In this document: positions 3,335 through 62,878 of the stretch, piece by piece
Numbering within the stretch: the first letter of the stretch is position 1
Layout of the letters: each line of letters starts with the position of its first letter
DNA from: Macrostomum lignano
Lineage: Eukaryota
Direction: 5' to 3'
Assembly: GCA_002269645.1 (NCBI GenBank)
Contig: NIVC01003240.1
Coordinates: 45,448-109,447 of the forward strand
DNA length: 64,000 bases
The notes under the pieces: model-generated
The model's database searches: none
The model's input: the letters and a program-made list of their open reading frames with translations, nothing else
What the model was told of the DNA's origin: nothing
Translations under genes and position numbers: made by a program

Positions 3335-3660
3335 AATTTGACCGACTAGTGATTATTTTGCGAGACTTAATGTACTTTTTTAGTGTTTAATATGCCATAA
3401 AGCAGGAATCAGATGGAGCGCTAATCTGAGCCCTGTCCGCTCGTTCTATTCTATTTGCAGTTCATTGCTTACATAAAAACTTCGAGTACAGACAGTCTGG
3501 TCTGGTCAAAACTGATGGACCGATGGTTAATAAGCAAGCGTATCTGCTCGGACTTGCTTATAAAATTTATAGTACTCGTACCAACAGATTTTATGGGGGG
3601 TGACAGTTACTGCTTTGATAGCTAAGCCGATAAAGTATAGAATCCCCGAATCCCCACTCT

Positions 3661-3965
3661 GCAGAACTGCTCTCGGCCATAGACAATAAAGCCAATCAAC
3701 GCCGCTGCCACAGAACTGCTCTCGGCCATAGACAATAAAGCCAATCAATGCCACTGCCACACAACTGATCAATGCCACTGTCACAGAACTGCTCTCGGCC
3801 ATAGACAATAAAGCCAATCAAAGCCACTGCCACACAACTGCTCTCGGCCATAGACAATAAAGCCAATCGAAGCCACTGCCACACAACTGCTCTCGGCCAT
3901 AGACAATAAAGCCAATCGAAGCCACTGCCACACAACTGCTCTCGGTCATAGACAATAAAGCCAAG
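3661..3965. repeat. Minisatellite, ~49-50-bp unit (GAACTGCTCTCGGCCATAGACAATAAAGCCAATC...GCCACA), ~6 copies
   Basis: Directly visible tandem copies. Confidence 0.93.
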
Positions 3966-4471
3966 ACAGACGGACGGATAGACAGACACGACAGATGTGA
4001 CCAAAAGAGCAAACCCGTCAAAGCCGACTATTTGTCTTTTTCATGTTTGATTTTCACTTTTTTACTTTAATTAACAGGAGCAACATGGTAAAGAATAGGC
4101 AAACGAATCTAAATCAATCATAGCTGGAGTGATTGGTGAAATTTGACTTTGTCTGTCAGTTCTACTGTACGAGTGTGTTTGTAAATTTGGTCTAACCAAT
4201 AAATATAAAGCTGGCTACTTCTGCTTCTGAGCATCGTTGTGTATACAGTAATTAATCTCTCCTTTTTATTGTCTTCTATTTAATCTAGATCTGCATAAAT
4301 CGTTCATTGTAAAAAGCGATATCTTTGGAAAATAATTTCCAGCTGTTGCAACTAGAAAGAAAATTGTGTGTTTAATCGGGATTAGTGGAGGTTATATACT
4401 CTTAGACAGGATTTAATAAGATTATTTGTCCTTTCCTGTTCCCGTGCATTGGTAATTAGCATTGGCGACTG

Positions 4472-5250
4472 GCCAGTGTGCTCAGAGGTCTCTGCCATCA
4501 AGATTCCCAGTGTGCTCAGAGGTCTCTGCCATCAAGATTCCCAGTGTGCTCAAAGGTCTCTGCCATCAAGATTCCCAGTGTGCTTAGAAGTGTCTGTCAT
4601 CAAGATTCCCAGTGTGCTCAGAGGTCTCCGTCATCAAGATTCCCAGTGTGCTCAGAGGTCTCCGTCATCAAGATTCCCAGTGTGCTCAGAGGTCTCTGCC
4701 ATCAAGATTCCCAGTGTGCTCAGAGGTCTCTGTCATCAAGATTCCCAGTGTGCTCAGAGGTGTCTGTCATCAAGATTCCCAGTGTGCTCAGAGGTGTCTG
4801 TCATCAAGATTCCCAGTGTGCTCAGAGGTGTCTGTCATCAAGATTCCCAGTGTGCTCAGAGGTCTCCGTCATCAAGATTCCCAGTGTGCTCAGAGGTCTA
4901 TGCCATCAAGATTCCCAGTGTGCTCAGAGATGTCTGTCATCAAGATTTCCAGTGTGCTCAGAGGTGTCTGTCATCAAGATTCCCAGTGTGCTCAGAGGTC
5001 TATGCCATCAAGATTCCCAGTGTGCTCAGAGGTGTCTGTCATCAAGCATTCCCAGTGTGCTCAGAGGTCTCTGCCATCAAGATTCCCAGTGTGATTAGAA
5101 GTGTCTGCCATCAAGCATTCCCAGTGTGCTCAGAGGTGTCTGTCATCAAGCATTCCCAGTGTGCTCAGAGGTGTCTGTCATCAAGATTCCCAGTGTGCTC
5201 AGAGGTGTCTGTCATCAAGATTCCCAGTGTGCTCAGAGGTGACTGTCATA
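4472..5250. repeat. Minisatellite, 34-bp unit CCAGTGTGCTCAGAGGTCTCTGCCATCAAGATTC, ~23 copies
   Basis: Directly visible tandem array. Confidence 0.97.
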
Positions 5251-6652
5251 AAGATTTTCTGCGTGCTTTGGTCCCTATATATGGTCAAACTATAGTGCTA
5301 TCGTAAGAATACATTTCAAATGAGGTTGTAAACAAATAAACGAGGTATAAAGCACGTGCTCACATCACGAAAGAGGGAACAGTAAGATAAATATAACGGA
5401 TAAAAATGCCCGGAGCTGAGTTCACCTGATAATATCGGGAATGCTGCTGTTTCTCTTTTTTCTAGATATGAATATGCGCTAACTAACGTGTTATTGCAAG
5501 GAAAAAAACGATACGTATCAACATTTCGTACAGTATGGCTATCGCAGCTAATATATGAAATTGACATTATTTCATAACAGAACAATATAACAACTATTTC
5601 AATCTGAGGGGGTTACTTCGCCTTTTGCAGCGAAATCTGTTGACGATAAAATGGCTCCATGGGTTCCTGGGTAGCCATGTAAACTAATGTGAAAGGGGTT
5701 AACTTCTCTCCCAAAAGCTGACCCCAAGTTGTTACAGGGCTGACCTAATCTCAGCTGTTCTCACCAATTTTTACGTAGGGTTATCTTCTAATGTGATATC
5801 TTGATGTACTTTTTAACACTGTACTATGTACTGGTAGTGTATCAGGTAAAGTCAATAGCGTATTATGTATTATTGGCCTGAGCGGTCTTTATGGCTAGTG
5901 CTAGTGCTAGATCTAGTGCTAGTGCTAGTATAAAGCACTAGCCCTGAGGCTGATTATCAATTTCGTCTCCAAATATGATAGTTGGAGAGGTACCAAGAAC
6001 TCAATTGAGCGTGAGAAGAAACCAGGATCAAAAGAGTTTATTTTATTTGGCTTGCAGTCTGCTTCTATTTATACTAAGAAATGCCCTTACTGTTTAAAAC
6101 GAAATTATGGGATAATAAATAATTTTTTTATTCGTAAAGTTTAAGTACCGTTTTCTAAGAAGTGCAAATTAAGCCTACTTAACTAAGCCACCTAGTCACA
6201 TGTTGGACCTTAATGTGAAAGAACTTTTAAGATCCTGCAAATGGAAAAGGCTCTGTGGAGAAAGCAACCAACCAGACCATATATTCTACTGCCTGCTACC
6301 AGAGTTCAAATCTCAGCATAGGGCTTGTGAAACCGTAGGATTTCTAAACACGGTGGTAATGGTATGTCAACATCAGTGTCAAGAGAGGGGAATTTTACGT
6401 CTTCCTTCAACGGTGAATTTGATATTTTTACAGGTAGAGCTGGCGATGTTGACAAACTAGTCCTGGTCGAGTTTCGCCTTCGAAAATAGCGAGCGTAATC
6501 GTCAGCGTAGCGTTTGTACTAGCGAGGAGCACCACAAAGGAGAGCCATCCCTAGTTCTTTTGCTTGTTTTGTTCCATCTTTGAGAGAGCACAAAGGCACA
6601 AACCTTGAGCGCGCCGGATTGCTATTGGGAAGTTTCAAAGACCTTAGGGTAG

Positions 6653-10200: not shown

Positions 10201-10404
10201 CTACTACACGATTATGAAGTTTCAAAGGCTTCGCCGATAAAGAGGCTTCGCTTGCCGGAGAGTTTGCCGACCCTTGGAGTAGAGTCTTGTTTACTCATTC
10301 TGATACATTGAAACACTTGATTCCAGCTCTGTGATTGCGCAAAGTTTCAGAACAGTAACTTGTCCGCCTCTATACGTACCTCTAACAGTCTGTAAGTATG
10401 AGCT

Positions 10405-12392
10405 CTAGCCTCTATCTCGCTTATCTCCCTGCCTCTACCTCGCTTATCTCCCTGCCTCTATCTCTCTTATCTTCCTGTCTCTATCTCGCTTATCTTCCTG
10501 TCTCTATCTCGCTTATCTCCCTGCCTCTATCTCTCTTATCTTCCTGTCTCTATCTCGCTTATCTCCCTGTCTCTATCTCGCTTATCTCCCTGCCTCTATC
10601 TCGCTTATCTCCCTGTCTCTATCTCGCTTATCTCCCTGCCTCTACCTCGCTTATCTCCCTGCCTCTATCTCGCTTATCTCCCTGCCTCTACCTCGCTTAT
10701 CTCCCTGCCTCTACCTCGCTTATCTCCCTGCCTCTACCTCGCTTATCTCCTTGCCTCTACCTCGCTTATCTCGCTTATCTCCCTGTCTCTATCTCGCTTA
10801 TCTCCCTGCCTCTACCTCTCTTATCTCCCTGTCTCTATCTCGCTTATCTCGCTTATCTCCCTGTCTCTATTTCGCTTATCTCCCTGTCTCTATCTCGCTT
10901 ATCTCCCTGTCTCTATCTCGCTTATCTCCCTGTCTCTATCTCGCTTATCTCCCTGTCTATCTCGCTTATCTCCCTGCCTCTACCTCGCTTATCTCCCTGC
11001 CTCTATCTCGCTTATCTCCCTGCCTCTACCTCGCTTATCTCCCTGCCTCTACCTCGCTTATCTCCCTGCCTCTACCTCGCTTATCTCCCTGCCTCTACCT
11101 CGCTTATCTCCTTGCCTCTACCTCGCTTATCTCGCTTATCTCCCTGTCTCTATCTCGCTTATCTCCCTGCCTCTACCTCTCTTATCTCCTTGTCTCTATC
11201 CCTCTTATCTCCCTGTCTCTATCTCGCTTATCTCGCTTATCTCCCTGTCTCTATTTCGCTTATCTCCCTGTCTCTATCTCGCTTATCTCCCTGTCTCTAT
11301 CTCGCTTATCTCCCTGTCTATCTCGCTTATCTCCCTGCCTCTACCTCGCTTATCTCCCTGCCTCTATCTCGCTTATCTCCCTGCCTCTACCTCTCTTATC
11401 TCCCTGCCTCTACCTCGCTTATCTCCCTGCCTCTACCTCGCTTATCTCCCTGCCTCTACCTCGCTTATCTCCCTGTCTCTATCTCGCTTATCTCCCTGTC
11501 TATCTCGCTTATCTCCCTGCCTCTACCTCGCTTATCTCCCTGCCTCTATCTCGCTTATCTCCCTGCCTCTACCTCGCTTATCTCCCTGCCTCTACCTCGC
11601 TTATCTCCCTGCCTCTACCTCGCTTATCTCCCTGCCTCTACCTCGCTTATCTCCTTGCCTCTACCTCGCTTATCTCGCTTATCTCCCTGTCTCTATCTCG
11701 CTTATCTCCCTGCCTCTACCTCTCTTATCTCCTTGTCTCTATCCCTCTTATCTCCCTGTCTCTATCTCGCTTATCTCGCTTATCTCCCTGTCTCTATTTC
11801 GCTTATCTCCCTGTCTATCTCGCTTATCTCCCTGCCTCTACCTCGCTTATCTCCCTGCCTCTATCTCGCTTATCTCCCTGCCTCTACCTCTCTTATCTCC
11901 CTGCCTCTACCTCGCTTATCTCCCTGCCTCTACCTCGCTTATCTCCCTGCCTCTACCTCGCTTATCTCCTTGCCTCTACCTCGCTTATCTCCCTGCCTCT
12001 ATCTCGCTTATCTCCCTGCCTCTACCTCGCTTATCTCCTTGTCTCTATCCCTCTTATCTCCCTGCCTCTACCTCGCTTATCTCCCTGCCTCTATCTCGCT
12101 TATCTCCCTGCCTCTACCTCTCTTATCTCCTTGTCTCTATCCCTCTTATCTTCCTGTCTCTACCTACAGTATCTCCCTGCCTCTATCTCTCTTATCTTTC
12201 CGCCTCTACCTCTCTTATCTTCCTGTCTCTACCTCTCTTATCTCCCTGTTTTTATCTCTCTTATCTCCTGGTCTCTACCTCTCTTATCTTTCCGCCTCTA
12301 CCTCTCTTATCTCCCTGTTTTTATCTCTCTTATCTCCCTGTTTTTATCTCTCTTATCTCCCTGTTTTTATCTCTCTTATCTCCCTGTCTCTA
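10405..12392. repeat. Pyrimidine-rich minisatellite, ~23-bp unit CTCTATCTCGCTTATCTCCCTGC, degenerating at the 3' end
   Basis: Directly visible array; explains the 674-aa and 560-aa L/S/P ORFs. Confidence 0.97.
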
Positions 12393-13571
12393 AAGCACTG
12401 TCTTTTAATCCTAATCGATTAATATCTTTTTAAAAGAATGACCCGTCTATTTTTTTTTCTGGCAGCCTAATTAGCTTTGCGCGAGCATCTTGTATGCGAT
12501 GTAGAGCATTCTCCCCTCCCCTGCTTCCCTCTCCTGGGAAATAGCAGAAATTTCCTATTTGCATTGCCGTCTGTGTCACACTGTACAAGTCAAGCCTGCC
12601 CATCCTCTCCTATCAGCGGATTTGCGAAATATTTTAGTACAAGTTGTTCTTTAATTTAGTTTGGCCAGACCGCCCCCGCTAGCAGCCTGTCCGGTCAATT
12701 GTAACCGGCACAATATAGAAATTTGCATCCCAATAGGCTTCAACTGAAAGCGAAGCGGAAAGGAGAGAAGGTCAATCTCAAATGAAGCTCAAACGCGCTT
12801 CATCCCGGATGGAAGATGGGGGCGGCAGATCCAGTCCCTGGGGGGGGGGGGTGGGGGCGGCTCGCTCAGTCGCGAATAATAATAAGACTTTTTGTCTTCA
12901 AAGTAAAAATACTCGTACAACCGACACTTCAAAGAGACAAAAAGCAGTGCCGTTTATAATTAAGCCTCTTTAAACCGCTCTGGTGTGGCGGAGGGTGGGG
13001 GCTGCTAGACTGATTGAAGGACCGTTCACAGCGCTAGACTGACTCGAGGATTTCTCTCTTTTTAACCTGAGCTGTTTTGCTCGCGGCGATTCTAATTACT
13101 GATCATGAAAACATTATTATGGCGGGCCAGGAGGCCAACCAAGCGACAACGTCCTAAGTTATCTGATCCACTTTTTAGGCGCTTTCCCCTAGGGGGGAGT
13201 CTCACTTTCCTACTCTTTCTACTCGGCTGTCTTCTCTTCTTCATTATAGCGTCTTGAGATGCTTCTAATTATTGATCCGCAAAGCACACACTCGCAAGAA
13301 CGAATATATAATACACGCTCGTAATAGCACTAGCTGCTATCGATGATGGGGCCTGAAAGCCGGACAGGATGGCTGACTGACAGAATTGCTATGTCTCTCA
13401 GACGCCAAATACGCGCTTTGTGCTTTGTTCGCGTGCAAAAATTAATTAAATTGCTAGCTTGCATTGTAGCTGAGAACATTGATCGTATCATTACAGGGAT
13501 AATTTCATTTCAATACATATTATAGTTCATTACATGCATACTAGCTAGGAGTGTTCGGGACGGGGTAGCTA

Positions 13572-15748
13572 GATTAAGCGCGCCAGGAACAAGCGCGCAT
13601 TTTCGCACATATTTTACATGGTTCGGAATAAGCGCGCAGTTTACTTTCCACAGACCGGAATAAGCGCGCAGTATTTTTGATCGATACAGGAAAAAGCGCG
13701 CAAAGCGCCATGACTTGGAACAAGCGCGCTAAAATTTTACCCGCTTTCGGAATGGCTGACCAAATGATGGCAACAAAACGGCAAGCCGACCAGCCGGCTC
13801 TGGACTCTCAGCCTGTCTGGTATCAGCAGCTCCAGCCGGCTCTGGACTCTCAGCCTGTCTGGTATCAGCAGCTCCAGCCGGCTCTGGACTCTCAGCCTGT
13901 CTCGTATAAGCAGCTCCAGCCGGCTCTGGACTCTCAGCCTGTCTCGTATCAGCAGCTCCAGCCGGCTCTGGACTCTCAGCCTGTCTCGTATCAGCAGCTC
14001 CAGCCGGCTCTGGACTCTCAGCCTGTCTGGTATCAGCAGCTCCAGCCGGCTCTGGACTCTCAGCTTGTCTCGTATCAGCAGCTCCAGCCGGCTCTGGACT
14101 CTCAGCCTGTCTGGTATCAGCAGCTCCAGCCGGCTCTGGACTCTCAGCCTGTCTCGTATCAGCAGCTCCAGCCGGCTCTGGACTCTCAGCCTGTCTCGTA
14201 TCAGCAGCTCCAGCCGGCTCTGGACTCTCAGCCTGTCTCGTATCAGCAGCTCCAGCCGGCTCTGGACTCTCAGTCTGTCTCGTATCAGCAGCTCCAGCCG
14301 GCTCTGGACTCTCAGCCTGTCTCGTATCAGCAGCTCCAGCCGGCTCTGGACTCTCAGCCTGTCTCGTATCAGCAGCTCCAGCCGGCTCTGGACTCTCAGC
14401 CTGTCTCGTATCAGCAGCTCCAGCCGGCTCTGGACTCTCAGCCTGTCTCGTATCAGCAGCTCCAGCCGGCTCTGGACTCTCAGTCTGTCTCGTATCAGCA
14501 GCTCCAGCCGGCTCTGGACTCTCAGCCTGTCTCGTATCAGCAGCTCCAGCCGGCTCTGGACTCTCAGCTTGTCTCGTATCAGCAGCTCCAGCCGGCTCTG
14601 GACTCTCAGCCTGTCTCGTATCAGCAGCTCCAGCCGGCTCTGGACTCTCAGCCTGTCTCGTATCAGCAGCTCCAGCCGGCTCTGGACTCTCAGTCTGTCT
14701 CGTATCAGCAGCTCCAGCCGGCTCTGGACTCTCAGCCTGTCTCGTATCAGCAGCTCCAGCCGGCTCTGGACTCTCAGCCTGTCTCGTATCATCAGCTCCA
14801 GCCGGCTCTGGACTCTCAGCCTGTCTCGTATCAGCAGCTCCAGCCGGCTCTGGACTCTCAGCCTGTCTGGTATCAGCAGCTCCAGCCGGCTCTGGACTCT
14901 CAGCCTGTCTCGTATCAGCAGCTCCAGCCGGCTCTGGACTCTCAGCCTGTCTCGTATCAGCAGCTCCAGCCGGCTCTGGACTCTCAGTCTGTCTCGTATC
15001 AGCAGCTCCAGCCGGCTCTGGACTCTCAGCCTGTCTGGTATCAGCAGCTCCAGCCGGCTCTGGACTCTCAGCCTGTCTCGTATCATCAGCTCCAGCCGGC
15101 TCTGGACTCTCAGCCTGTCTCGTATCAGCAGCTCCAGCCGGCTCTGGACTCTCAGCCTGTCTCGTATCAGCAGCTCCAGCCGGCTCTGGACTCTCAGCCT
15201 GTCTCGTATCAGCAGCTCCAGCCGGCTCTGGACTCTCAGCCTGTCTCGTATCAGCAGCTCCAGCCGGCTCTGGACTCTCAGCCTGTCTCGTATCAGCAGC
15301 TCCACCTCTACAACCAATGGTTTTATTAAGCAGCTCCATTTTTAATATTAGCGAACTTCTCAGCTGTAGTTTCAACTTTTAGCTCAGCTTTTAGCTTTTA
15401 GCAATTTTGTAACCTTGTAACCTTGCTTCGTCTTAAATACATAGTTTAAATTCGACTTTAATCTTAGTTCTGTTGAAAATCTGTGCGCGCTTATTCCAGG
15501 ACTTTTAAAAAACGTTGCGCGCTCTTTCCTGTACCTAAGAATATGGATGCGCGCTTATTACAGTATTTTGACAAAACTTTGCGCGCTCATTCCTGTATCG
15601 AGAAATATCGATGCGCGCTTATTACAGTATTTTGATATATCGCAGCGCGCTTATTCCAACATTTTTCCGTGCGCGCTTGTTCCCTGGCGCGCTTATTCCG
15701 ACGTGTGCAAAAAATACACGTGCGCGCTTATTCCTGGCGCGCTTAATC
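13572..15748. mobile_element. Foldback/MITE-like non-autonomous element: 28-bp inverted ends plus inverted subterminal motif arrays around a 42-bp minisatellite
   Basis: GATTAAGCGCGCCAGGAACAAGCGCGCA (13572-13599) is the reverse complement of 15721-15748 with one mismatch. About 6 GGAA(T/C/A)AAGCGCGC motifs on the left face about 10 inverted copies on the right. No TSD identified. Confidence 0.7.
13790..15305. repeat. Highly homogeneous minisatellite, 42-bp unit CAGCCGGCTCTGGACTCTCAGCCTGTCTCGTATCAGCAGCTC, ~36 copies
   Basis: Directly visible. The unit is a multiple of 3 and lacks stops in several frames, hence four long ORFs. Confidence 0.98.
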
Positions 15749-18173: not shown

Positions 18174-20195
18174 ATGAATTTGCCAGCACTGCGTTTGGCA
18201 GCTCGGTGCGGCGACTGCCAGCAGCTGCAGGCTGGACTTCAACAGCAGCAGCAGCCGCATCCGCTAGGAGCCAATGACCCAAGAAGGCAGCAGCTGCTGG
18301 CGTCGCTACTTGCCGCCGCGGCCGCCTGGGGTCACCTGCCGGCCGTTCGACTTCTGCTGAGCGCCGGCGCCACCGTCTGCGAGGCTAGCGGCGTTGTGGT
18401 CAGTGACTCGAGCAGAGTCAATGCGAGCCCGGACTGCCAGTGCTGGACCGGCGCCTCCGCTCTGCACTGGGCCGTCAGGCGGGGACACGCCGACGTGGTG
18501 AGGGAGCTGCTGTCGCGGAGCACCGTCGGCGCCAGGCTGATCAACTGTCGTGACGAAGACGGCGCCACTCCGCTGTCCGACTGCTGCCAGCACCAGCGGC
18601 TAGAGCTGGCCCGCCTGCTGCTGGAGGCTGGCGCCGACCCGAACGCCGCCTGTAGCCGCTACCAGCGCCGGCCACTGCACTGGGCCGCCTGCTCAGGCGA
18701 TGAAGCTCTAGCCCGGTGCCTCATTGACGCTGGCGCTGAGTCTGGTGCCGTGGACTGGCGCCAGCGGACCGCAGCCGACGTTGCTGAGGCCGTTGGGCAT
18801 GGACGATTGGCGGAGCAGCTCCGCATGGACGAGACTGAGCGGTGGCTGCCGAGCGGAGTAAAAACGTTGCTGTATGTTGTTAGGAATTTAATTGCTTGCA
18901 GGGTGTAAGCACATTCTCACCATGACCACCGTGACATGCTCGCTAGGAAATGCATACTAACATAAGTCAAGGATAACTATGCTTAAATACCCCCCAACGA
19001 TTTTCCTTCTGTCAGGCCTGACGTTGTGTGCTCCACCGCGCCCGATCAACTGCCGCACCAGCCGAAGGAGTCGCAGCAGCTGACCCGATTTCGCTCAGAG
19101 TCCGAGTCTCTTCCGCAGCAACTGCTGGTTGCTGCCAACCAGAGCCAGCTGCCCAGGCATCTGCATCAGCAACAGACAGCAGCCAGCCAGCTGCCCAGGC
19201 ATCTGCATCAACAGTCAAGCATTCCCAGCGCTTCATCTGGCTGGAATGCTCCGGCCATCGATCTGACTCAATCCCAGCCAGCAGCAGTCCTCCAGCAGCC
19301 GCCCGGTGTCAGCTCGTCCCGCCGATTCACCGACCCTTCGCTGCTGCCGCCGCCAGAACCGCAGCTGCCGAAGCTGGCCGCCTATTCGATATCGGAGAAG
19401 CCGCGCGGTCTCTGCTTAGTCCTGAGCAACGAGAACTACATCAAGCTTCAGCCGCGGCATGGCACCCAGCAGGACGTGGAGAGAATCGAGCAGCTCTTCG
19501 AACAGCGTCTCGGCTTCATAGTGGAGGTGAGAACCGACCTCACCGGCCGGCAATTGCTGGAAGCCGCCGCGAAGGCCGCAAAGAAGGCTCACCGGCACCG
19601 CAACGCCGACGCTTTCGTCTGCTTCTTGCTGGCCCACGGCGACTCCAGCGGAAATGTCTACGGAGTGGATGGCGTCAGCGTGTCTCTCAACGACATCGCC
19701 GCCGCATTCGACGTCGTCCGCTGCCCGGAGTTGGCGGGCAAACCGAAGGCCTTCTTTGTTCAGGCTTGCCGCGGCTCCAAGGTGGTCGCGGCGGCCACCT
19801 GCTCTTACGCTCTGCCGCCGGAGCTCGACGGTCCAGCAGCGGCTGCGCAGCCGCGGGCAACTCCGCTGGCAGTGTCGCCGGAGGGTGCTGACTACCTATT
19901 CGGGTTCGCCTGCTGCGAGAGCCGACCTGCCTACAGGTGCAGCGTCTCCGGGAGCATCTTCGTGCAGACTCTGTGCGACGTCATCGACAATTGGCTCGGC
20001 AGCGACGATCCGACGGCTGAGGTCGACGTCGAGGACGCTCTGATGGAGGCCAGGCGACGGATCTGCGCCGCGCCGGTGGATCAGGTCAGTGGCGGCGCCG
20101 TTGGGGGACTCGATCCTTACAGGCGCCCGGTGTACATGGTCCCAGAGGTCCGGTCTACACTGAGGTTTCGGCTGCGTCTCGGCGTGTGCGGCTGA
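18174..20195 (+). CDS. Ankyrin-repeat + caspase (peptidase C14A) fusion protein; join(18174..18871,19016..20195), 625 aa
   Basis: Exon 1 has ~5 ankyrin repeats (WGHLPAVRLLL, GASALHWAVRRGH, DGATPL, RRPLHWAA). Donor GTATGT at 18872 and acceptor TTTTCCTTCTGTCAG ending at 19015 join in phase 2 without a stop. Exon 2 has a Q/S/P linker, then KPRGLCLVLSN, PRHGTQQD, FLLAHG, KPKAFFVQACRG and small-subunit ADYLFGFA...AYR...GSIFVQTLC. Confidence 0.85.
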
Positions 20196-20355: not shown

Positions 20356-20728
20356 GTAAAAGTAAAACTCAAACACTTAATCACTCGATCACTCAATCAC
20401 TCGATCACTCAATCACTCGATCACTCAATCACTCGATCACTCAATCACTCGATCACTCGATCACTCGATCACTCAATCACTCGATCACTCGATCACTCGA
20501 TCACTCGATCACTCGATCACTCGATCACTCGATCACTCGATCACTCAATCACTCGATCACTCGATCACTCGATCACTCGATCACTCGATCACTCGATCAC
20601 TCGATCACTCGATCACTCAATCATTCAATCACTCAATCACTCGATCACTCGATCACTCGATCACTCGATCACTCAATCACTGAATCACTCGATCCCTCAA
20701 TCACTTAATCACTCGATCACTCGATCAC
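20356..20728. repeat. Octamer array (ATCACTCG/ATCACTCA)n
   Basis: Directly visible. Confidence 0.97.
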
Positions 20729-20973
20729 TAGAGAGACGTACCGCAATTTTATGAATACGGAAGCCTTTTTTGAGTGTGTTGCTATCCAGAAGTAAATAAA
20801 CATTTTAACACTGCACATTGTGTTTGCAGCTTCAATGTCTCACTTTGTTGGTGTGTTGCAATTTCAATACTCCATCGAATTTCTGTATCTGTACTCCTTT
20901 GTCGCAGTGCGGCCTGTATTTCAATTCCGATGTCATGCCACATGTCTGTATCTACTTTTTCTCTGTGTTTAAA

Positions 20974-21130: not shown

Positions 21131-21818
21131 ATTAGGGAAGGTGTAATAAATTATTATTAATTATTATTGTTATAGTAAACAAGTGTTGCGCATGTTTCTT
21201 GAAGGAACAAGAATAAAAAAATCGTTACATACACGCACTTCAGTAGTATGTGCTCAACTTGGCAGTGCAGAGCAACACAAATAGCTCTGCTAATACATGC
21301 AGACTTTGTCTGTTATTGTCGGCTTAGCAAACAACTCTTGCAATCGTCTCTCGGGGTATGGAACTGGGAACTTTAAGAGTCTCTAAACTCAATACTCAAA
21401 ATCTAGCTAATTAGACACACATCAAGCAATGGCGCAGAGCAGACGGAGATTTCAGACAGACAGACAGCCGCACACTCAGCTGGATTGTCCGAACATTCTG
21501 CTGAGCTTGACAACTAACTGCCTCTCTTTGCTCTCGGGTCGGTCTTTCATGTCTTGCTTTTAGCTGTATCTCTGCCTATCTCTCTCTTCTGTCCTCTCTG
21601 CCTGCCTATCTGGCTTGGGTCAGAGTTAAAAGAATGGCGAAACAACCAGCAGTCTCGGAGAGCGAAAAATGAATTTATAAACCAACGCGCAAAGCAAAAT
21701 TTGATAAACAGCCAGCCCTCCTCGGCGTGCCCCCCGAGGCTCGAACGATTTGAAAGCTTCGCATCTCTGGCATCTGATTGTGGCGGGGGTGGCGCTCGCA
21801 GCTCAGACAGGTCAGGCC

Positions 21819-24768
21819 ATGCCAGACCCAGATCTGCTTCAGGAGCAGCAGCTGGTGCTGCTTGAGGACGAGGTGTTCGACTTTGACGACCTGGCCGCCG
21901 CGGTTCAGCTGCAGCCGGATGAGCAGCCGCCGGAGCAGCCGCCTCCGCCTCCGCCGCCGCCGCCAGGTGAAGAGTTTATGAGTGGTGATCAGTCACTCGA
22001 AAACTCCCACTTCTAGACACTGGGGAACAAGCGCCTTGGTATATACTCGGTGTCCTTAGCTTTATCTGTGGGTCGAACAAAACCAGAGCGAATCAGAATT
22101 CTTGACGGTCCTCGAGCTCGGAATTAGGAATAGAACGTGCGCCCTAATGAACAATTGAATTCTTCAAATTTCTGTAATTATTCCTCCTGAAGGGCGTCTT
22201 CTTCGTTACGTCCGAAACGAAATGGATAACTCAAATCAAATCAATAAATCCTCTAGTAATATATCCTAGGAAATAAGGAGGCCTTTTTCAAATGTGTCGA
22301 CAATAAGTGGCTTTCGTAAACTCAATTAATCAGCTTATTAGTGCTATAGTAAAGAACTAAATCTGGTAAACGCTTACCAATTGGACAAGTGTAGTCTCTC
22401 CGAGATTGGTCTCCTTCTCTTCTTCTTCAGAGTCATCTTTGAGACCGCTCCAAGTCTGAATTTTTGACTTGGATTTTCGCTTATATTTAAAGTAAAATTT
22501 TGGTGAAAACTGGTTTAAAATCGGTTATTTACTTCGGTCACACATGTTTGATTAAGAGGCCATGAATGTTTGATAATTATCATATATGGAATTAAGCAAA
22601 TACAACTCCCGAGAACCGGTTCCTTGATCAAATAAACGTTGGTTCTACGTAGGGTTCTGAGTCACTTTTATTTGCACATGACTCATTCTAAAAATCGATA
22701 TTCTAAAAATAGATTGCGAGTTTAAGTTGGTTTTCTTAGATGTTACTTTAAGTAGTGCATTACTATCTGACTAACGGCTCTCTACACAGGCTCCGCAGCT
22801 GAGCAGGACGCCCGCGACACTCGCGCGATGATCGCCAGCATGCTGGAGGGCCAGCGCCCGCTGATGACCATGACTGCCATGGACACGGCGCCCTCGGCCT
22901 ATCTGGAGTATCTGAGAGTCATCGTCAACTGCGGCCGCCTTCTGCGACAGCCGGCGATGCCGGCGGACCTCCGCCAGTCAGTGGTGGCCCTGCTAGCCAG
23001 GGCAAAGCCGCTGTTCTGTGCCAACGCGTTGAACCTCATCGTCCAGACGATGTCCGCGTCTATTAGCAGCCGCGGAGACCAGCCGGTCGCCGTCGCGATG
23101 CCCGCCTTCTGGAGCGCCACGTTCAGCCAGCACGAGTGCCGCCTGTGGGTCGACCTGGTGGAGACGCTGCTCTTCTTCTGGGCCGACGGAGGCGGCGGCA
23201 GCGGAGGCGGCGGCGCAGCTTTTGTTGAGTCGTTCGCTTTGGGCCTCCTTGACCGCCTCGCGGAACTGCGTGCCGCCTACGCGCCGCCAACAGCCCAGGA
23301 CTCCGGTGACGGCATCGCTGCGGCCGCCTCGATTGACGAATCTCGATCCAGGGCGGAGCGTCTGGCAGCTGAGCTGAGCCGCAGACTGCGACCCCAGCAC
23401 CTGCTGGCGCTGTCGCTTGGAGCTGGCGGGACTGGCGGCACCCAAAGCCGAAGACGCGCGCCTCTGGGTTCTTCGTCCAGATCGGGGCCGACAAGAGCTG
23501 CAAGGTGCGGCGTTAAAAGCCAGTTCCAGTGGCGGCCTTTGTAACCTTGATTTCGTGCTTTTGTCCTCCCCATCTGCAGTCTTTCTCCTTCTTATTTCTG
23601 CACTCTTTGTCCTCTTCATCTCTGCACTATTTGTCCTCTTCATCTCTGCACTCTTTGTCCGCCTCATCTCTGCACTCTTTGTCCGCCTCATCTCTGCACT
23701 CTTTGTCCTCCTCATCTCTGCACTCTTTGTCCTCCTCATCTCTGCACTATTTGTCCTCCTCATCTCTGCACTATTTGTCCTCTTCATCTCTGCACTCTTT
23801 GTCCTCTTCATCTCTGCACTCTTTGTCCTCCTCATCTCTGCACTCTTTGTCCTCTTCATCTCTGCACTCTTTGCCCTCCTCATCGATCTGCACTCTTTGT
23901 CCTCTTTATCGATCTGCACTCTTTGTCCTCTTAATCTCTGCACTCTTTGTCTTCCCTATCTTCACTCTTTGTTTTCAAGCGTTTTCCTATAAGCTTCAAA
24001 TATGTAAGCACTATTTCTTGCAGATCTTCAACTGCAAACACGACGCGGAAACAGCAGAGACAGACTCAGACGCCGACTCAGAAGCAGCAGCAGCAGTCAT
24101 CTCTGCTGGCAGCCGCCTTTGTCTGCTTCTTGGAAGCCGCGGGCGTCCGGCTGCAGCCGCCACCGTCGTTGGAGGCTGCAAAAGCCGCGCTGGAGGGCGT
24201 CACAATTGAGCAGGCCGGATCGGCGTTGCGCCTCCACCAGACCGACACGTTCGCCGACAATTTGCCGCGGCTGCAGGGACTCCGGAAGACGCTGCGCTGC
24301 CTGCCGACGTCTGCAGCTGACGATGCCGCTGGCTGGCTGCGGTCGCTGCGGACCGAAGTCGAAGCCTCTGCCGCCGCCGCCGGCGTCAACGAGCCCGCCG
24401 ACCTCGGCGACTTGCTGGCCAGCTTTGCTGCCTACGCGTCCGCCGTCTGCGACTTCGAAGCCGCCTGGCAACGAAACGTTGTCAAGGACGCCGATGCGAT
24501 GTCGCCGTTCCTGCTCAGCTGCCTCTCTCGAGTTCTGGCGGGCAACATCGGGCCGGCCAAGGCGGTGCCGGGCTGCTGGGAGGCGCTGCCGGAGACCCTG
24601 CGCGACGAGCTGGAGCAGCTGTCGGCCCGCCGACTGGCCTCGGTGTCGGCGGCGGCTCAGGACGCGGACGACTCGGACAGCGGCCCGGCGGCCCCGGCAG
24701 CCTTTCACTTTGATGTTGTTGTGCTCAAGCAGGCGGAGATCCGGCCCGAGTTTCTGTCACCCGAATGA
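21819..24768 (+). CDS. Uncharacterised protein; join(21819..21966,22790..23504,24024..24768), ~535 aa; acidic/poly-Pro N-terminus, helical A/L-rich body
   Basis: GC-rich coding-like exons with GT/AG boundaries in consistent phases 1 and 2 (total 1608 nt). No family recognised; the start codon is uncertain. Confidence 0.65.
23590..23955. repeat. Intronic minisatellite, 24-bp unit TCATCTCTGCACTCTTTGTCCTC(C/T)
   Basis: Directly visible in intron 2 of the orphan gene. Confidence 0.95.
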
Positions 24769-25409: not shown

Positions 25410-27966
25410 TCAATTTCTGGCCTCGTATCTTTTGCCGCTGGCCATCATAAACACGAAATCGTCGTAGCTGATGCGACCGTCGCAGTCGAGGTCCGCCTCT
25501 TTGAACATGTCGTCCAGCTCCTCCGGGGTGGCCTCGATGCGCATGCTGGCTAGGCTGGCGGCCAGCTCATCGCGGGTGATGTACCCATCGCCGTCTTTGT
25601 CGAATACCTGCGCGGGTATGTGGGATCAGATGCTGTGATGCTGTGATCAGAGTGATGCTGTGATCAGATTGATGCTGTGATCAGAGTGACGCTGTGATCA
25701 GAGTGATGCTGTGATCAGACCGTGATGCTGTGATCAGAGTGATGCTGTGATCAAAGTGATGCTGTGATCAGAGTGATGCTGTGATCAGAGTGATGCTGTG
25801 ATCAGAGTGATGCTGTGATCAGAGTGATGCTGTGATCAAAGTGATGCTGTGATCAGAGTGATGCTGTGATCAGAGTGATGCTGTGATCAGAGTGATGCTG
25901 TGATCAGAGTGATGCTGTGATCAGAGTGATGCTGTGATCAGAGTGATGATGCTGTGATCAGAGTGATGCTGTGATCAGAGTGATGCTGTGATCAGAGTGA
26001 TGCTGTGATCAGAGTGATGATGCTGTGATCAGAGTGATGCTGTGATCAGACCGTGATGCTGTGATCAGAGTGATGCTGTGATCAGAGTGATGCTGTGATC
26101 AGAGTGATGCTGTGATCAGAGTGATGATGCTGTGATCAGAGTGATGCTGTGATCAGAGTGATGATGCTGTGATCAGAGTGATGCTGTGATCAGAGTGATG
26201 CTGTGATCAGAGTGATGCTGTGATCAGAGTGATGCTGTGATCAGAGTGATGCTGTGATCAGAGTGATGCTGTGATCAGAGTGATGCTGTGATCAGAGTGA
26301 GCTGTGATCAGACCGTGATGCTGTGATCAGAGTGATGCTGTGATCAGAGTGATGCTGTGATCAGATTGAGCTGTGATCAGACCGTGATGCTGTGATCAGA
26401 GTGATGCTGTGATCAGACCGTGATGCTGTGATCAGACCGTGATGCTGTGATCAGAGTGATGCTGTGATCAGAGTGATGCTGTGATCAGATGCTGTGATGC
26501 TGTGATCAGACCGTGATGCTGTGATCAGACCGTGATGCTGTGATCAGAGTGAGCTGTGATCAGACCGTGATGCTGTGATCAGAGTGATGCTGTGATCAGA
26601 GTGATGCTGTGATCAGAGTGATGCTGTGATCAGAGTGATGCTGTGATCAGAGTGATGCTGTGATCAGAGTGATGCTGTGATCAGAGTGATGCTGTGATCA
26701 GAGTGATGATGCTGTGATCAGAGTGATGCTGTGATCAGAGTGATGATGCTGTGATCAGAGTGATGCTGTGATCAGAGTGATGCTGTGATCAGAGTGATGC
26801 TGTGATCAGAGTGATGCTGAGATCAGACCGTGATGCTGTGATCAGAGTGATGCTGTGATCAGAGTGATTCTGTGATCAGAGTGATGCTGTGATCAGAGTG
26901 ATGCTGTGATCAGAGTGATGCTGTGATCAGAGTGATGCTGTGATCAGAGTGATGCTGTGATCAGAGTGATGCTGTGATCAGACCGTGATGCTGTGATCAG
27001 ACCGTGATGCTGTGATCAGAGTGATGCTGTGATCAGAGTGATGCTGTGATCAGATGCTGTGATGCTGTGATCAGACTGTGATGCTGTGATCAGAGTGATG
27101 CTGTGATCAGATTGATGCTGTGATCAGAGTGACGCTGTGATCAGAGTGATGCTGTGATCAGACCGTGATGCTGTGATCAGAGTGATGCTGTGATCAAAGT
27201 GATGCTGTGATCAGAGTGATGCTGTGATCAGAGTGATGCTGTGATCAGAGTGATGCTGTGATCAGAGTGAGATGTGACCAGAGTGAGATTTGACCACAGT
27301 AAACAGTGCCTGACCTTGAAAGCGCCTCTGGTCTCCTCGGTAGGCGTACGGCGCTGCAGTTTAATCATAATCATTTGCACGAACTCTTCGAACTCGATTG
27401 ACCCGTTGCCATCCTGATCAACTTCGTTAACGATGTCCTGTTGGTAGCAAGAAAACTAACTGTAAACAAAATTTTAATTCTCTGTTGTCTTCTCGACTTA
27501 GAAATCGCAGGTATATTATTTTACCATAAGCTGAACTGAGTGACAGGACCGAGTGACAGAGCCGAGTGACAGAACCAGAGTGACGGAGCCCGAGCGACGG
27601 AGTCAGAGTGACAGAGCCAGAGTGACAAAACCGAGTGACAGAGCCAGAGTGACGGAGCCCGTGTGACAGAGCCAGAGTGACAGAACCGAGTAACAGAGTC
27701 TGAGTGACAAAACCGAGTGACAGAGCCGGAGTGACAGAACCGAGTGACAGAGCCAGAGTGACAGAACCGAATAGCATAAGTCAGCAAGTGAGAATAAGCC
27801 TTGCCTTGAGCTCCGAGTCGGTGGGGTTGTGCCCCAGCGACCGCATCGCGTGGCCCAAGTCCTCAACGGTGATGCTGCCGCAGCCGGACCTGTCAAACAA
27901 AGTGAAGACGCTCTTCAGCTGGGCCACCTGCTCCTGTGGAATGCTGCCAATATCGAAGTCAGCCAT
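25410..27966 (-). CDS. Calmodulin-like four-EF-hand protein; complement(join(25410..25607,27315..27437,27805..27966)), 160 aa
   Basis: MADFDIGSIPQEQVAQLKSVFTLFDRSGCGSITVEDLGHAMRSLGHNPTDSELK|DIVNEVDQDGNGSIEFEEFVQMIMIKLQRRTPTEETRGAFK|VFDKDGDGYITRDEL...EADLDCDGRISYDDFVFMM. All joins are phase 0; intron 1 uses an AAG/GCAAG donor. Too divergent to be canonical calmodulin. Confidence 0.9.
25625..27300. repeat. Intronic minisatellite, 17-bp unit GATGCTGTGATCAGAGT, ~100 copies, filling intron 2 of the calmodulin-like gene
   Basis: Directly visible. Confidence 0.98.
27535..27772. repeat. Intronic 12-14-bp array (GAGTGACAGAGCC[A/G]) in intron 1 of the calmodulin-like gene
   Basis: Directly visible. 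Confidence 0.93.
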
Positions 27967-28985: not shown

Positions 28986-30230
28986 CTAGCTGGCCTCAGT
29001 GATCGGTTCGGAAGTGGCCGCGTCAGCCGCAGATGATGCGGCAGCCTCGGCGGCCTTGGCCCTCTCCAGCTCGGCAGCGTCCTCCTCCTTGAAGAACTTG
29101 TTGCGCCACAGCCGGTGCACCAGCTCGGTGGTGACCAGGTGGCCGGAGTTCGAGGCGATCAGGCGCAGGAGAAACACTCCGTCGTTGCGCAGGTGCCTGT
29201 TGACAAACTCTTGCAGCGCCGCGGAGTCCCGCTCTCCGTGGTACTTGTCGCTGGTGGACAGGTAGCTGTCAATGAAGTCATACTGTTTAAAGGGCAGGCA
29301 GTACAGCAGCCAGTACAACAGACTGACTATATTAGCTGCCGAGATGACAAGGTACCAGAACCAGAGGAAGACGAAGATCTTCTCGTTGAACAGGTTGACG
29401 GTGAGCACGCACTGCATAGTGTAGGGATGCCGGACATTCAACCGGCGGATCTCGAAGTCGCAGTGGGTGATGCGCGGAAAGATGCCGCTGTTGCGCCAGC
29501 TCTTGCCCTGGACAATCTCGCTGAAGACGCCCAAGTCGAAGACACGGTAGCTGGAGCTCAGCATGCAGCAGACGGCCAGCAGGAGGCCGAAGGAGGCGCA
29601 GAAGAAGAGCATCTTGGTGAACACGTAGCTGAGGATCAGGTAGGACCCGAAGCCGCCGCGCAGGGTCCTACGAAGCCGCTCAGTGCGACTCTTGCGGTTC
29701 TTGTCATCCAGAGCGAAGATCACCGCCTCCTCGAATGTCTTGGCCAGCGAGACCACGGCCTGAGGCCTCTCAATTGGGTCAACGCTGATCACCGAAGAGG
29801 CATTGTGCACGATGGTCTTCAGGCTGACCCCGGTGCGCGTGTTGAGAATCTTCCACACAATATTGGGCACATTGAGGGCCAGGGCCATGAGCGCCAGGAT
29901 GAAGGGCACGTACTGGTAGTAGTTGATCTCGTACTGACGTCTCACGTGCTCGTGATCCGGCACGCCGGTCTCATTCATGGGCACAAAGTAGGTGTTCTTG
30001 ATCCAGCAGTAGCTCTCCGAATATTTCTCCCATTGTTCGCTGAACTCGGCAGGAATCCAGCACTGCAGCGGCTTGCCAACGTACTGCCTGGCGCTCACGA
30101 CCACGGCAAAGATCACAATCATGATGGACGTGTAATAGTAGTTGAGCCTGTCGGAGAAATCGTTGTCTGACCTCAGAGACGAGTCGGTCAGCTTGAAATC
30201 TCCAACCTTGCTGAAGAAATCCTGATTCAT
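28986..30230 (-). CDS. Innexin (invertebrate gap-junction/pannexin family), intronless, 414 aa
   Basis: DDFSDRLN-like DNDFSDRLNYYYT, YVGKPLQCWIP, YCW, YYQYVPFIL, FPRITHCDF, QCVLTVNLFNEKIFVFLWFW; four TM segments and two Cys per extracellular loop. Confidence 0.97.
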   Translation of the reverse strand: MNQDFFSKVGDFKLTDSSLRSDNDFSDRLNYYYTSIMIVIFAVVVSARQYVGKPLQCWIPAEFSEQWEKYSESYCWIKNTYFVPMNETGVPDHEHVRRQYEINYYQYVPFILALMALALNVPNIVWKILNTRTGVSLKTIVHNASSVISVDPIERPQAVVSLAKTFEEAVIFALDDKNRKSRTERLRRTLRGGFGSYLILSYVFTKMLFFCASFGLLLAVCCMLSSSYRVFDLGVFSEIVQGKSWRNSGIFPRITHCDFEIRRLNVRHPYTMQCVLTVNLFNEKIFVFLWFWYLVISAANIVSLLYWLLYCLPFKQYDFIDSYLSTSDKYHGERDSAALQEFVNRHLRNDGVFLLRLIASNSGHLVTTELVHRLWRNKFFKEEDAAELERAKAAEAAASSAADAATSEPITEAS

Positions 30231-33651: not shown

Positions 33652-34737
33652 CTAGCAGACAGCTCCGCCCTCCGCAGTCGCTGCAGCCCTTCGTGAACGC
33701 CTCTGCAGCCGCTGCTGCTGCAGACTCCGCTGTTGCCGCCGTCTCTGGCCGGCTTGACGGCAGGCCAGAATGCGCCGCATCATCTGCTGTCGGAAGCTGG
33801 CGCTCAGGCACAGCAGCACAAACAGATTCAGGCAGGTGTCGGCAACAATCAGCAGGTGGTTGATTCTGTACAGAATGTGCAGCGTCTCGGCGAACTCCTT
33901 GGGAAAGCCGGCCTTGTTGCCGTTAGCGATCGTCCAGATGATGCCGACGTACACCACCAGTGCGTACGGCAGCTCGAGCAGAGCGAAGGCCACGGCGATG
34001 CTCACCACGATGCGGCTGGCCTGGGCCTCCCTGCGCTGAAACTGAAACACGTTGGTGCGCCGCACCCGGTGCACGATGAGCGCGGAGGCGCCAGCGATCA
34101 CCGTCCCGGCGGCCACGGTGTTCAGGAAGTGTCTCAGCAGGGCCAGCGCGCGTCCAGCCAGTTTAGCCACCGAGTTTGGCGCGCAGCTGACCAGCGTCAG
34201 GTCCAGGCAGCTCCAGGCGGCGCTGGCCAGCCCGAAGCCGGTGAACAGGCAAGCCTGACGCTTCGGCGCCATCAAGTCGCGGGATTGCAACGGACGAGCA
34301 ACGGCCTTGGCCCTGGCGACAGTCATGGCGCAAAGCCAGAAATTGCGCAACAGATGCCAGGCCTCAAAGCTGTAGTTGAATTTGTCCAGAATGTCAACAG
34401 CCGAGCTGCAGCTTGGCGTCCAGACCTCAGCGTGCATCACCAGCAGGGACAGGTTCATGCCGATCTCTGCCGCGGCCAGCAGCGGAATTCCCTTGGCGCC
34501 GGTGCGGGGCCGCGGGGTCCGAGCGAGCAGCACCACCAGACCGCAGTTGAGCACCAGAGCGAGCAGGCTGAGAGCCTGGATGGCCACGGCCAGCTGGCGC
34601 GATGTCGGACCGGGATCCGGGAACTGGATGGCAGCCGACAGCGAGTCGGTGTCGTTTGTAGCATCGCAGAGAACTGGAATCATGTTGATGCTTAGCCTGG
34701 GTATTGCGTGAAGATGAAGCTGGGAAGCTGTCTGCAT
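33652..34737 (-). CDS. Intronless divergent rhodopsin-like (class A) orphan GPCR, ~361 aa
   Basis: About seven hydrophobic helices, N-terminal NDT sequon, TM1 LVLN, TM3 end ARAKAVARPL, TM6 EAQASRIVVSIAVAFALLELPY, TM7 DTCLNLFVL. Confidence 0.82.
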   Translation of the reverse strand: MQTASQLHLHAIPRLSINMIPVLCDATNDTDSLSAAIQFPDPGPTSRQLAVAIQALSLLALVLNCGLVVLLARTPRPRTGAKGIPLLAAAEIGMNLSLLVMHAEVWTPSCSSAVDILDKFNYSFEAWHLLRNFWLCAMTVARAKAVARPLQSRDLMAPKRQACLFTGFGLASAAWSCLDLTLVSCAPNSVAKLAGRALALLRHFLNTVAAGTVIAGASALIVHRVRRTNVFQFQRREAQASRIVVSIAVAFALLELPYALVVYVGIIWTIANGNKAGFPKEFAETLHILYRINHLLIVADTCLNLFVLLCLSASFRQQMMRRILACRQAGQRRRQQRSLQQQRLQRRSRRAAATAEGGAVC

Positions 34738-37150: not shown

Positions 37151-37791
37151 CAACAGACTGAGGCGTGTTCTATGATGTTTGTAGGAATCGATTATGGCAT
37201 AGTAGATACGTATAACGCGAACTAATACAGTACTCCTTGGTTCTCAAAGTGTGTAATGAACTCCAGTTAGTTTGCTAGTAAATCATATCTTATCTAAATT
37301 GTACATGTAAATGAATTTCGTTGGGTTCGAATGAATCTAATTAAAATGTGTTGTTATCCCCTTATTTTGCCCGCGGATTTCGATGCAAGTGGGATTGATC
37401 CACCCTATTTCTCTTGTAAGCAGATTTTGCACCGGTTATTTCAGGTCACAGACTCAATCAGCTTGACCTTAGCGAAGTCAAACAACTGCAAAGCGAAGAC
37501 CGTAGCGGGACAGACAGATTTATCCCAATTCTCCCCAACCTGCGGCCCGACCCGAAGAAGCCAACAGAGGCAGACCGGCTGTGTCAACAGGTTTGAAAAT
37601 CTGTCCGCTGCCAAAATTAGAAATTGAAGAAAGCTCGGTCGCTATGGGAAGCTGAAATTGTCAGCAGTGAGGCCCTGTCCGCTCGAATTTCCGTTTCAGC
37701 GCAGGGAGTCGCCAAATGCGAAGGCTGTCTGAGCTGCTGCAAGATTTACAGGAAATTGTGCGCTGGCGTCTTTCAGATGAACCTTGTCAAG

Positions 37792-51305: not shown

Positions 51306-57958
<6,653 letters not shown>

Positions 57959-61807: not shown

Positions 61808-62878
<1,071 letters not shown>

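Follow-up and report, generated by a model that had tools for sequence, protein, structure and literature searches.

Gene structure at 18174-20195

We analyzed a 64,000-nt stretch of the Macrostomum lignano genome (contig NIVC01003240.1, assembly GCA_002269645.1; hereafter the window, whose positions serve as coordinates throughout) which holds, at 18174-20195, what is predicted to be one cis-spliced two-exon gene encoding an ankyrin-caspase fusion. The original prediction for this segment, that an ankyrin open reading frame (ORF) and a caspase ORF are joined through one 144-nt intron into a stop-free protein of 625 residues, was correct in all its coordinates and splice signals. Exon 1 (18174..18871, +, 68% G+C) carries the ATG, the N-terminal region and the ankyrin repeats, and encodes residues 1-232 and two nt of codon 233. 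The single intron (18872..19015, +, 144 nt, phase 2, 42% G+C) has a GTATGT donor, a perfect TACTAAC branch-point box (18955-18961), a pyrimidine tract and a CAG acceptor. Exon 2 (19016..20195, +, 64% G+C) encodes the linker, the caspase domain and the stop (residues 233-625). The joined coding sequence is 1878 nt long, has no internal stop and ends at a TGA (20193-20195). An in-frame TGA lies 51 nt upstream of the ATG at 18174, with no other in-frame ATG, and in unspliced form the ankyrin ORF stops 12 codons beyond the donor, at 18908. The agreement of splice signals, domains and motifs is far beyond chance.

The best database match to the protein is M. lignano BOX15_Mlig006436g2 (P0001), which is also 625 residues long and is 98% identical over its full length. 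The gene for P0001, on NIVC01000830.1 of the same assembly, has a span of exactly 2022 bp, equal to that of the window gene, and the two copies differ at 29 of the 2022 nt (11 in exon 1, two in the intron and 16 in exon 2). The intron length and both splice sites are identical in the second copy, its flanks align and the ORFs of both copies are intact; from the common gene span, splice sites and aligned flanks we conclude that the gene was copied recently. High redundancy and many recent duplicates are known features of this genome (PMC5730564). The annotation of this assembly was derived from StringTie/TACO RNA-seq transcripts and a de novo transcriptome, not ab initio, and its gene boundaries were cut at experimental trans-splice and poly(A) sites (PMC5730564). 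Since an RNA-seq-derived annotation gives the identical span and a 625-residue product, the annotated junction would reflect assembled transcripts and imply the 18871|19016 join. The gene model is already public, as a GenBank hypothetical protein and as a UniProt entry with an ANK_REP_REGION.

Between the two copies there are 13 amino-acid replacements, none at catalytic residues and most of them (nine) in the prodomain and linker, and the ratio of nonsynonymous to synonymous substitutions (dN/dS, Nei-Gojobori) of 0.31 indicates that the two copies are under purifying selection. This ratio and the intact frames argue against the gene being a decaying duplicate. A 596-residue protein (P0002, UniProt A0A1I8…) that appeared to be a paralog of 45% identity is the same gene in an older assembly, with many frameshifts, and was rejected as a paralog. 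An ORF at 21750-22016 (+) (…LVLLEDEVFDFDDLAAAVQLQPDEQPPEQPPPPPPPPPGEEF…) is appended to the caspase in P0002; this join is probably an artifact and the ORF may belong to a downstream gene.

One could also read the locus as two separate genes, one for an ankyrin protein and one for a caspase, transcribed as a polycistronic precursor that is resolved by spliced-leader trans-splicing, in which case an intergenic outron has been taken for an intron and the fusion is an error of annotation. Operons do occur in M. lignano, where about 7% of assembled transcripts are multi-gene precursors (PMC5730564, PMC8629364) and are resolved by a spliced leader that ends in ATG (PMC8629364), and the acceptor at 19015 resembles cis and trans acceptors alike. 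Against this, methionine occurs in the 625-residue protein only at positions 1, 218, 576 and 607, so that the first in-frame ATG of exon 2 (residue 576) lies beyond the catalytic cysteine, and a spliced leader joined at 19016 would read ATG GCC TGA, out of frame and with a stop after one codon. As exon 2 is thus untranslatable alone, the fusion would be the only route to a caspase here. The 144-nt interval contains no AATAAA or ATTAAA, has the canonical donor and TACTAAC box, and joins compatible frames that are intact in both copies. Furthermore, a related ORF on a Logan contig (L002, described below) encodes ankyrin repeats, linker and large subunit in one genomic ORF, and the ankyrin caspases of parasitic flatworms have the same layout. 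A pair of separate genes is thus so improbable that, on the sequence, we regard it as effectively excluded.

Neither AATAAA nor ATTAAA occurs in the 500 nt that follow the caspase stop, and the 3′ end of the transcript is therefore not obvious from the sequence. A microsatellite of 44 copies of ATCACTCG (20380-20729, 92% matches) starts ~185 nt past the stop.

The ankyrin prodomain and linker

The region N-terminal to the caspase domain is 354 residues long and carries an ankyrin-repeat domain (18279..18842, +, residues ~36-223) of four to five helix-turn-helix repeats, as judged by Pfam, AlphaFold2 and PDB matches. The Pfam matches are Ank_2 at residues 47-158 (E=5e-21), Ank at 93-127 (E=1e-20) and Ank_4 at 135-184, and the PDB matches of this region are to ankyrin-1/2 and DARPins. 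No CARD or DED was matched by Pfam in the 625-residue protein at E<=0.01, which upholds the proposal that an ankyrin array, and not one of these domains, forms the prodomain.

The AlphaFold2 model was made for P0001, the 98% identical copy, with a 113-row alignment (mean predicted local distance difference test score, pLDDT, 70; predicted template modeling score 0.53), and is used here for per-residue confidence only. It contains ankyrin helix pairs at 36-70, 91-122, 133-151, 167-185 and 200-223, with pLDDT of 86-96 over residues 90-190, together with a caspase domain of pLDDT >90. The repeats at 91-122, 133-151 and 167-185 are confident, and those assigned with less certainty are the first repeat (36-70) and the cap at the C-terminal end (200-223); a disordered insert occupies residues 68-86. 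Between the ankyrin repeats and the caspase domain there is a Q/P/S/L-rich linker of ~130 residues (~224-354), of which residues 234-354 are encoded at 19017..19379 (+). The model is disordered from ~196 to ~345, with pLDDT <50 across 196-338. Within the linker the sequence SQLPRHLHQQ occurs twice as a direct repeat (residues 276-285 and 290-299).

The caspase domain and its active site

Pfam placed Peptidase_C14 (PF00656) on residues 363-582 (E=4e-41), the match covering positions 1-211 of a profile that has 233. From this match, the alignment to caspase-8 and the model, the p20-like large subunit was placed at residues 355-489 (19380..19784, +), followed by an intersubunit linker (residues 490-511, 19785..19850, +) and the p10-like small subunit (residues 512-625, 19851..20192, +). 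The model has pLDDT >90 for residues 350-489 and 520-590, and the loop 490-511 is disordered in it; with the Pfam match this agrees with the p20-linker-p10 alpha/beta fold of caspases (MEROPS C14A).

The catalytic histidine, H440 (19635-19637, +), lies in LAHG and the catalytic cysteine, C484 (19767-19769, +), in QACRG, as originally predicted, and they align to H317 and C360 of caspase-8. The three residues proposed for the S1 pocket, R380 in PRHGT (19455-19457, +), Q482 in QACRG and R540 in AYR (19935-19937, +), likewise align to their caspase-8 counterparts (R260, Q358, and R413), and these columns are R/Q/R in >93% of 226 other caspase domains. The candidate autoprocessing site PELD504|G (D504, 19827-19829, +) falls in the disordered loop and aligns with caspase-8 LEMD384, in agreement with its proposed role as the intersubunit site. 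PELD is kept in the second copy, and paralogs have an xxxD sequence at the equivalent place (e.g., HETD|A in P0162). The protein thus appears to have everything required of a catalytically competent, Asp-specific caspase zymogen, and it is predicted to be active.

By several comparisons the catalytic domain is caspase-8-like. In HMMER searches the best PDB matches were the caspase-8 structures 6px9 and 3h11 (E about 1e-29), and the nearest named relatives outside Macrostomum are fish caspase-8 and caspase-8-like proteins. Scored against hidden Markov models (HMMs) of caspase classes, the domain reached 180 bits with the DED/caspase-8 type versus 153 with the executioner and 150 with the CARD type; this scoring was used only to discriminate among these three, as a narrow profile of parasite ankyrin caspases is not comparable with broad profiles. 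Caspase-8 and caspase-10 share with the window protein the five residues at R260/H317/Q358/C360/R413, the D384 site and an SYR-type (not SWR) motif. They differ from it in having death effector domains in place of an ankyrin prodomain, and caspase-8 has QACQG where the window protein has QACRG and Trp420 where it has Ile547. The latter difference lies in the sequence GSIF, which stands in place of the canonical GSWF/GTWY. The Trp of GSWF forms part of the S2/S4 wall in canonical caspases. At its C-terminus (residues 608-615) the window protein has the motif VPEVRSTL.

Relatives in flatworms and other animals

The original prediction implied that a caspase with an ankyrin prodomain is a new architecture, for which we find no support. 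Such "ANK caspases" were first noticed in Schistosoma by Lee et al. 2014 (PMC11463336), and form a named, maximally supported clade that is sister to the DED caspases (Horkan et al., Genome Biol Evol 2024, evae204, PMC11463336). The gene belongs to an already described class, one which is functionally uncharacterized, and the objection raised beforehand, that the fusion might be a common and well-characterized family, therefore holds in part. The term "ANK caspase" was found in no other paper of the literature searched. In the published account these proteins are found in platyhelminths that are parasites and nowhere else, apart from a single convergent instance in an annelid (Alitta virens), and M. 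lignano is credited with only a caspase with a kinase-like prodomain (PAA54824) that is sister to the ANK clade, no other unusual platyhelminth prodomain being reported (PMC11463336). Supplementary Table 1 of the corresponding preprint (bioRxiv 10.1101/2023.12.11.571055) lists ANK-caspase, DED-caspase and FADD each as N/A for M. lignano, and a CARD caspase and APAF-1 as present. The same supplementary file includes M. lignano PAA88208 (Mlig019067g3), which is represented at 90% identity by P0162, a protein in which Pfam clearly recognizes ankyrin repeats. The occurrence of ankyrin caspases in free-living M. lignano contradicts the published parasite-only distribution, not the membership of the class.

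When the caspase domain was searched exhaustively against 1.84 billion representatives, 5634 matches were returned. Those with the top E-values were rejected as nearest relatives, since each is a gene model in which the scores of two or three caspase domains in tandem are summed, and by BLASTP and trimmed alignments the per-domain identity outside M. lignano is <=~40%. A word-indexed search was of little use, the caspase domain alone giving one match and a seven-sequence profile a haphazard subset of caspases that included no parasite ANK caspase; sequences of the latter were taken from the bioRxiv supplementary file of Horkan et al. Among the matches listed several have ankyrin repeats and, by cluster look-ups, most of these are M. 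lignano genes.

M. lignano itself has at least seven predicted Ank+caspase gene families. In addition to the window gene they include Mlig001045 (P0155, ~650 residues, about 10 repeats), Mlig019067 (P0162, 599 residues, "Caspase-8" in UniProt), Mlig000705/009621 (P0165, ~700 residues), Mlig008053/008805 (P0250, 1067 residues, about 20 repeats), Mlig004809 (P0350, a short protein with a remnant of about two repeats, ~80 residues) and Mlig030125 (P0235, BOX15_Mlig030125g1, 1072 residues), in which a kinase, a pseudo-caspase, ankyrin repeats and an active caspase follow one another. The arrays thus vary between about two repeats in P0350 and roughly twenty in P0250. The catalytic R/H/Q/C/R residues are retained by all, as is, except for Casp.PK (PAA54824/PAA75167), the order of ankyrin repeats then caspase seen in the window gene, to whose catalytic domain theirs are 27-39% identical. 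Two of the paralogs have protein-kinase domains, one of them with the added pseudo-caspase. In Casp.PK the caspase follows two kinase-like domains and a Q-rich linker. The pseudo-caspase domain of P0235 has neither catalytic Cys nor His (QTHRD, IIGCGS), and P0235 either is a true protein of several domains or results from a model that fused two neighboring genes; its grouping with Mlig004809 has 95% bootstrap. For Mlig019067, tblastn points to three or more introns, including one within the linker. The Logan contig mentioned above (SRR23782937_55709, L002) has at 2106-3755 a 549-residue ORF in which ankyrin repeats, linker and p20 are uninterrupted in genomic DNA. This ORF is collinear with Mlig019067 (33% identity over 549 residues, E=3e-63), ends where an intron seems to break the p10 part, and is flanked by AT-rich sequence as in M. 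lignano.

The parasite proteins (e.g., E. multilocularis CDS36952, named "caspase 8," S. haematobium CAH8442799 and S. mansoni XP_018647858) share with the window gene its phylum, an organization of ankyrin repeats, long low-complexity linker and C-terminal active caspase (in CDS36952, Ank at 61-267 and C14 at 476-754 by Pfam), QACRG, an aliphatic residue in place of the Trp of GSWF, and a C-terminal PEVRxTL. Both occur in genomes that are reported to lack FADD and DED caspases. They differ in catalytic domain sequence (31-35% identity by BLASTP) and in host, the window gene being from a free-living flatworm while ANK caspases are parasite-specific according to the literature. Outside the flatworms, ankyrin repeats accompany a caspase in the jellyfish Sanderia malayensis (P0134), the shrimps Penaeus monodon and P. 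chinensis (P0376/P0380) and, from the literature, the annelid Alitta virens. The shrimp proteins, annotated "caspase-13-like" and "caspase Dronc-like," show the architecture in ecdysozoans, where the literature states that it is unobserved. Their caspase domains group with CARD/Dronc-like caspases, whereas the jellyfish domain groups with a DED caspase, and both look like independent fusions.

Phylogenetic position of the window gene

Caspase domains were compared in neighbor-joining trees (Kimura distances, bootstrap) of 244 domains and of a selected set of 46, which included the ANK caspases of S. haematobium, E. multilocularis, H. diminuta and M. corti, as well as flatworm DED, CARD and executioner caspases. 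The outcome was divided, in that the paralog Mlig019067 joined the parasite ANK caspases, at 89% bootstrap among the 46 domains, and the window gene did not. In the 244-domain tree Mlig019067, L002 and the parasite ANK clade, which there takes in Sparganum proliferum P0238, form a group at 47%, and the window gene falls with Mlig000705, Mlig001045 and Casp.PK at 37%; among the 46 domains the window gene, P0165, P0155 and Casp.PK group at 48%. The two clades stand beside the DED/caspase-8-type domains in the smaller tree without support (3%). It is well supported by these sequence comparisons that free-living Macrostomum has an ortholog, Mlig019067, of the parasite ANK caspase, and the window gene appears to lie in a divergent Macrostomum-specific clade with a labile prodomain, either ankyrin or kinase. 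The clustering of Casp.PK with the window gene and its ankyrin paralogs (43-48%) would mean that prodomains were swapped within one clade.

Short sequence signatures were also compared. The motif PE[VM][RK]x[TQS]L is common to all five parasite ANK caspases, to the window protein and to its paralogs Mlig019067 and Mlig000705, and was seen in only two of ~229 other caspase domains, which favors membership of the window gene in the ANK caspases. The sequence AQR before the S1 Arg is common to Mlig019067 and the parasites only. Loss of the GSWF Trp was considered as a synapomorphy of ANK caspases and found to be invalid, as ~45% of a similarity-biased comparison set also have no Trp at this position. 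BLAST with the ankyrin domain was uninformative for lineage, generic consensus-like ankyrin proteins scoring higher.

Because the published tree sets Casp.PK beside the ANK clade and our trees set Casp.PK with the window gene, it is probable that the window clade goes back to the fusion from which the parasite ANK caspases arose. A broader scenario, which we regard as possible at somewhat under even odds, is that ANK caspases had arisen by the time of the common ancestor of Macrostomorpha and Neodermata, early in the rhabditophorans, and were later lost in planarians. In Macrostomum they would have expanded to at least seven genes with variable arrays and kinase swaps, would have replaced the FADD/DED input and may constitute a ligand-gated repertoire of initiators, the window gene being a divergent member of that single fusion.

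Proposed function

A long N-terminal interaction domain is a hallmark of initiator caspases, and ankyrin repeats are generic binding scaffolds. Caspase-8 and caspase-9 are latent monomers that are activated by proximity-induced dimerization. On balance we favor the interpretation that the window holds one two-exon ANK caspase gene, a second copy of BOX15_Mlig006436, whose product is probably an initiator-type zymogen gated by ankyrin-mediated clustering. The protein would be made as an inactive, single-chain, monomeric zymogen, and its ankyrin repeats would bind a putative partner or platform and so bring zymogens together. Dimerization by proximity would then activate the protease, as in caspase-8 and caspase-9, and self-cleavage at PELD504|G would follow, this autoprocessing stabilizing the active form. 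The active enzyme might cut Asp sites in executioner caspases, which M. lignano has, or in other substrates. The outcome would be an upstream cell-death input in place of FADD and DED caspases and, since M. lignano is reported to have neither, it is presumably to some other platform that the ankyrin prodomain links the enzyme. Recruitment or autoinhibition through ankyrins, outside the apoptosome and the adaptors of the death-inducing signaling complex, is plausible and fits this reported absence.

Several observations weigh against this interpretation. We infer initiator status from the long prodomain and the caspase-8-like domain alone, and two close paralogs score slightly better with the executioner HMM. 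The replacement of the GSWF Trp by Ile means that substrate preference may differ. With respect to lineage, the window gene did not cluster with the parasite ANK caspases in the neighbor-joining trees, monophyly of all flatworm ANK caspases was recovered in 1% of bootstrap replicates, and the ankyrin region of the window protein does not specifically resemble the corresponding regions of other ANK caspases. Mlig006436 is mentioned in no paper of the literature searched.

The executioner scores bear on a different role for the prodomain, as a module for targeting or substrate selection. The enzyme would in that case be a constitutively dimeric, executioner-like or non-apoptotic caspase that is cut by an upstream caspase and tethered to cytoskeleton, membrane or a signaling complex. 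The nearest paralogs P0165, P0250 and Casp.PK do score slightly higher with the executioner than with the caspase-8-type HMM, the deep nodes of the trees are without resolution, the APAF-1 and CARD-caspase route of M. lignano could act upstream, and the generic binding capacity of ankyrin repeats would serve tethering equally. We nevertheless consider this role unlikely, as it is caspase-8-type models and structures that give the window protein its highest scores, its long N-terminal interaction domain is typical of initiators, and its linker Asp site is aligned with the caspase-8 autoprocessing site.

The size and variety of the family invite another explanation, in which the ankyrin array folds back on the caspase domain or otherwise keeps it inactive, to be released by the binding of a ligand that may come from a pathogen; the family in its expanded form would then be an innate-immune receptor repertoire with a built-in death protease. 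Seven Ank+caspase families further to the window gene in one species, with about two to roughly twenty repeats and kinase prodomain swaps, are consistent with such an autoinhibited sensor-effector; the ~130-residue flexible linker would permit the fold-back, and nine of the 13 nonsynonymous differences between the copies are in the prodomain and linker. However, the overall dN/dS of 0.31 gives no sign of positive selection and, since recent duplicates arise from the redundancy of this genome (PMC5730564), part of the copy number would not be adaptive. We consider this autoinhibited sensor-effector decidedly improbable.

Implications for the distribution of ANK caspases

Both the architecture and the gene model were already known, and the new result is a modest though concrete one: a free-living flatworm that lacks the class according to the literature does possess it, and in expanded form. 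In schistosomes and tapeworms ANK caspases are the only long-prodomain caspases besides a caspase-2-like CARD caspase, and they had been proposed as parasite-specific components of cell death. The M. lignano genes correct the published distribution and would place the fusion before parasitism, in which case the loss of DED caspases looks reciprocal and not parasite-linked. ANK caspases are a class so far known from sequence alone, and M. lignano, which is free-living, transgenic and RNAi-tractable, and has both a clear ortholog (Mlig019067) and a divergent expansion that includes the window gene, offers an experimental system for them. As a laboratory model it should allow ordinary genetics and biochemistry to identify what the ankyrin prodomain binds and on which platform the enzyme is activated.

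Surroundings of the gene in the window

Two neighbors of the caspase gene are genuine genes without evident link to it: a single-ORF innexin (28986-30230, -, Pfam E=7e-88) and a rhodopsin-family G-protein-coupled receptor (33652-34737, -, E=2e-7). Long mini- and microsatellite arrays fill the window, with periods of 4-42 nt and up to 267 copies (1447-2763, 4473-5256, 10408-12392, 13790-15304, 25635-27286, 37787-39517, 53189-54183, 61808-62874 and others). A 674-residue ORF at 10398-12422 is spurious, being made by a repeat array, and the ORFs with Pfam matches at 4449-5306 (LRR_5) and 13677-15329 (DUF6471, PurT_C) are tandem-repeat arrays and not genes. The tandem arrays explain the strong local GC and AT skews.

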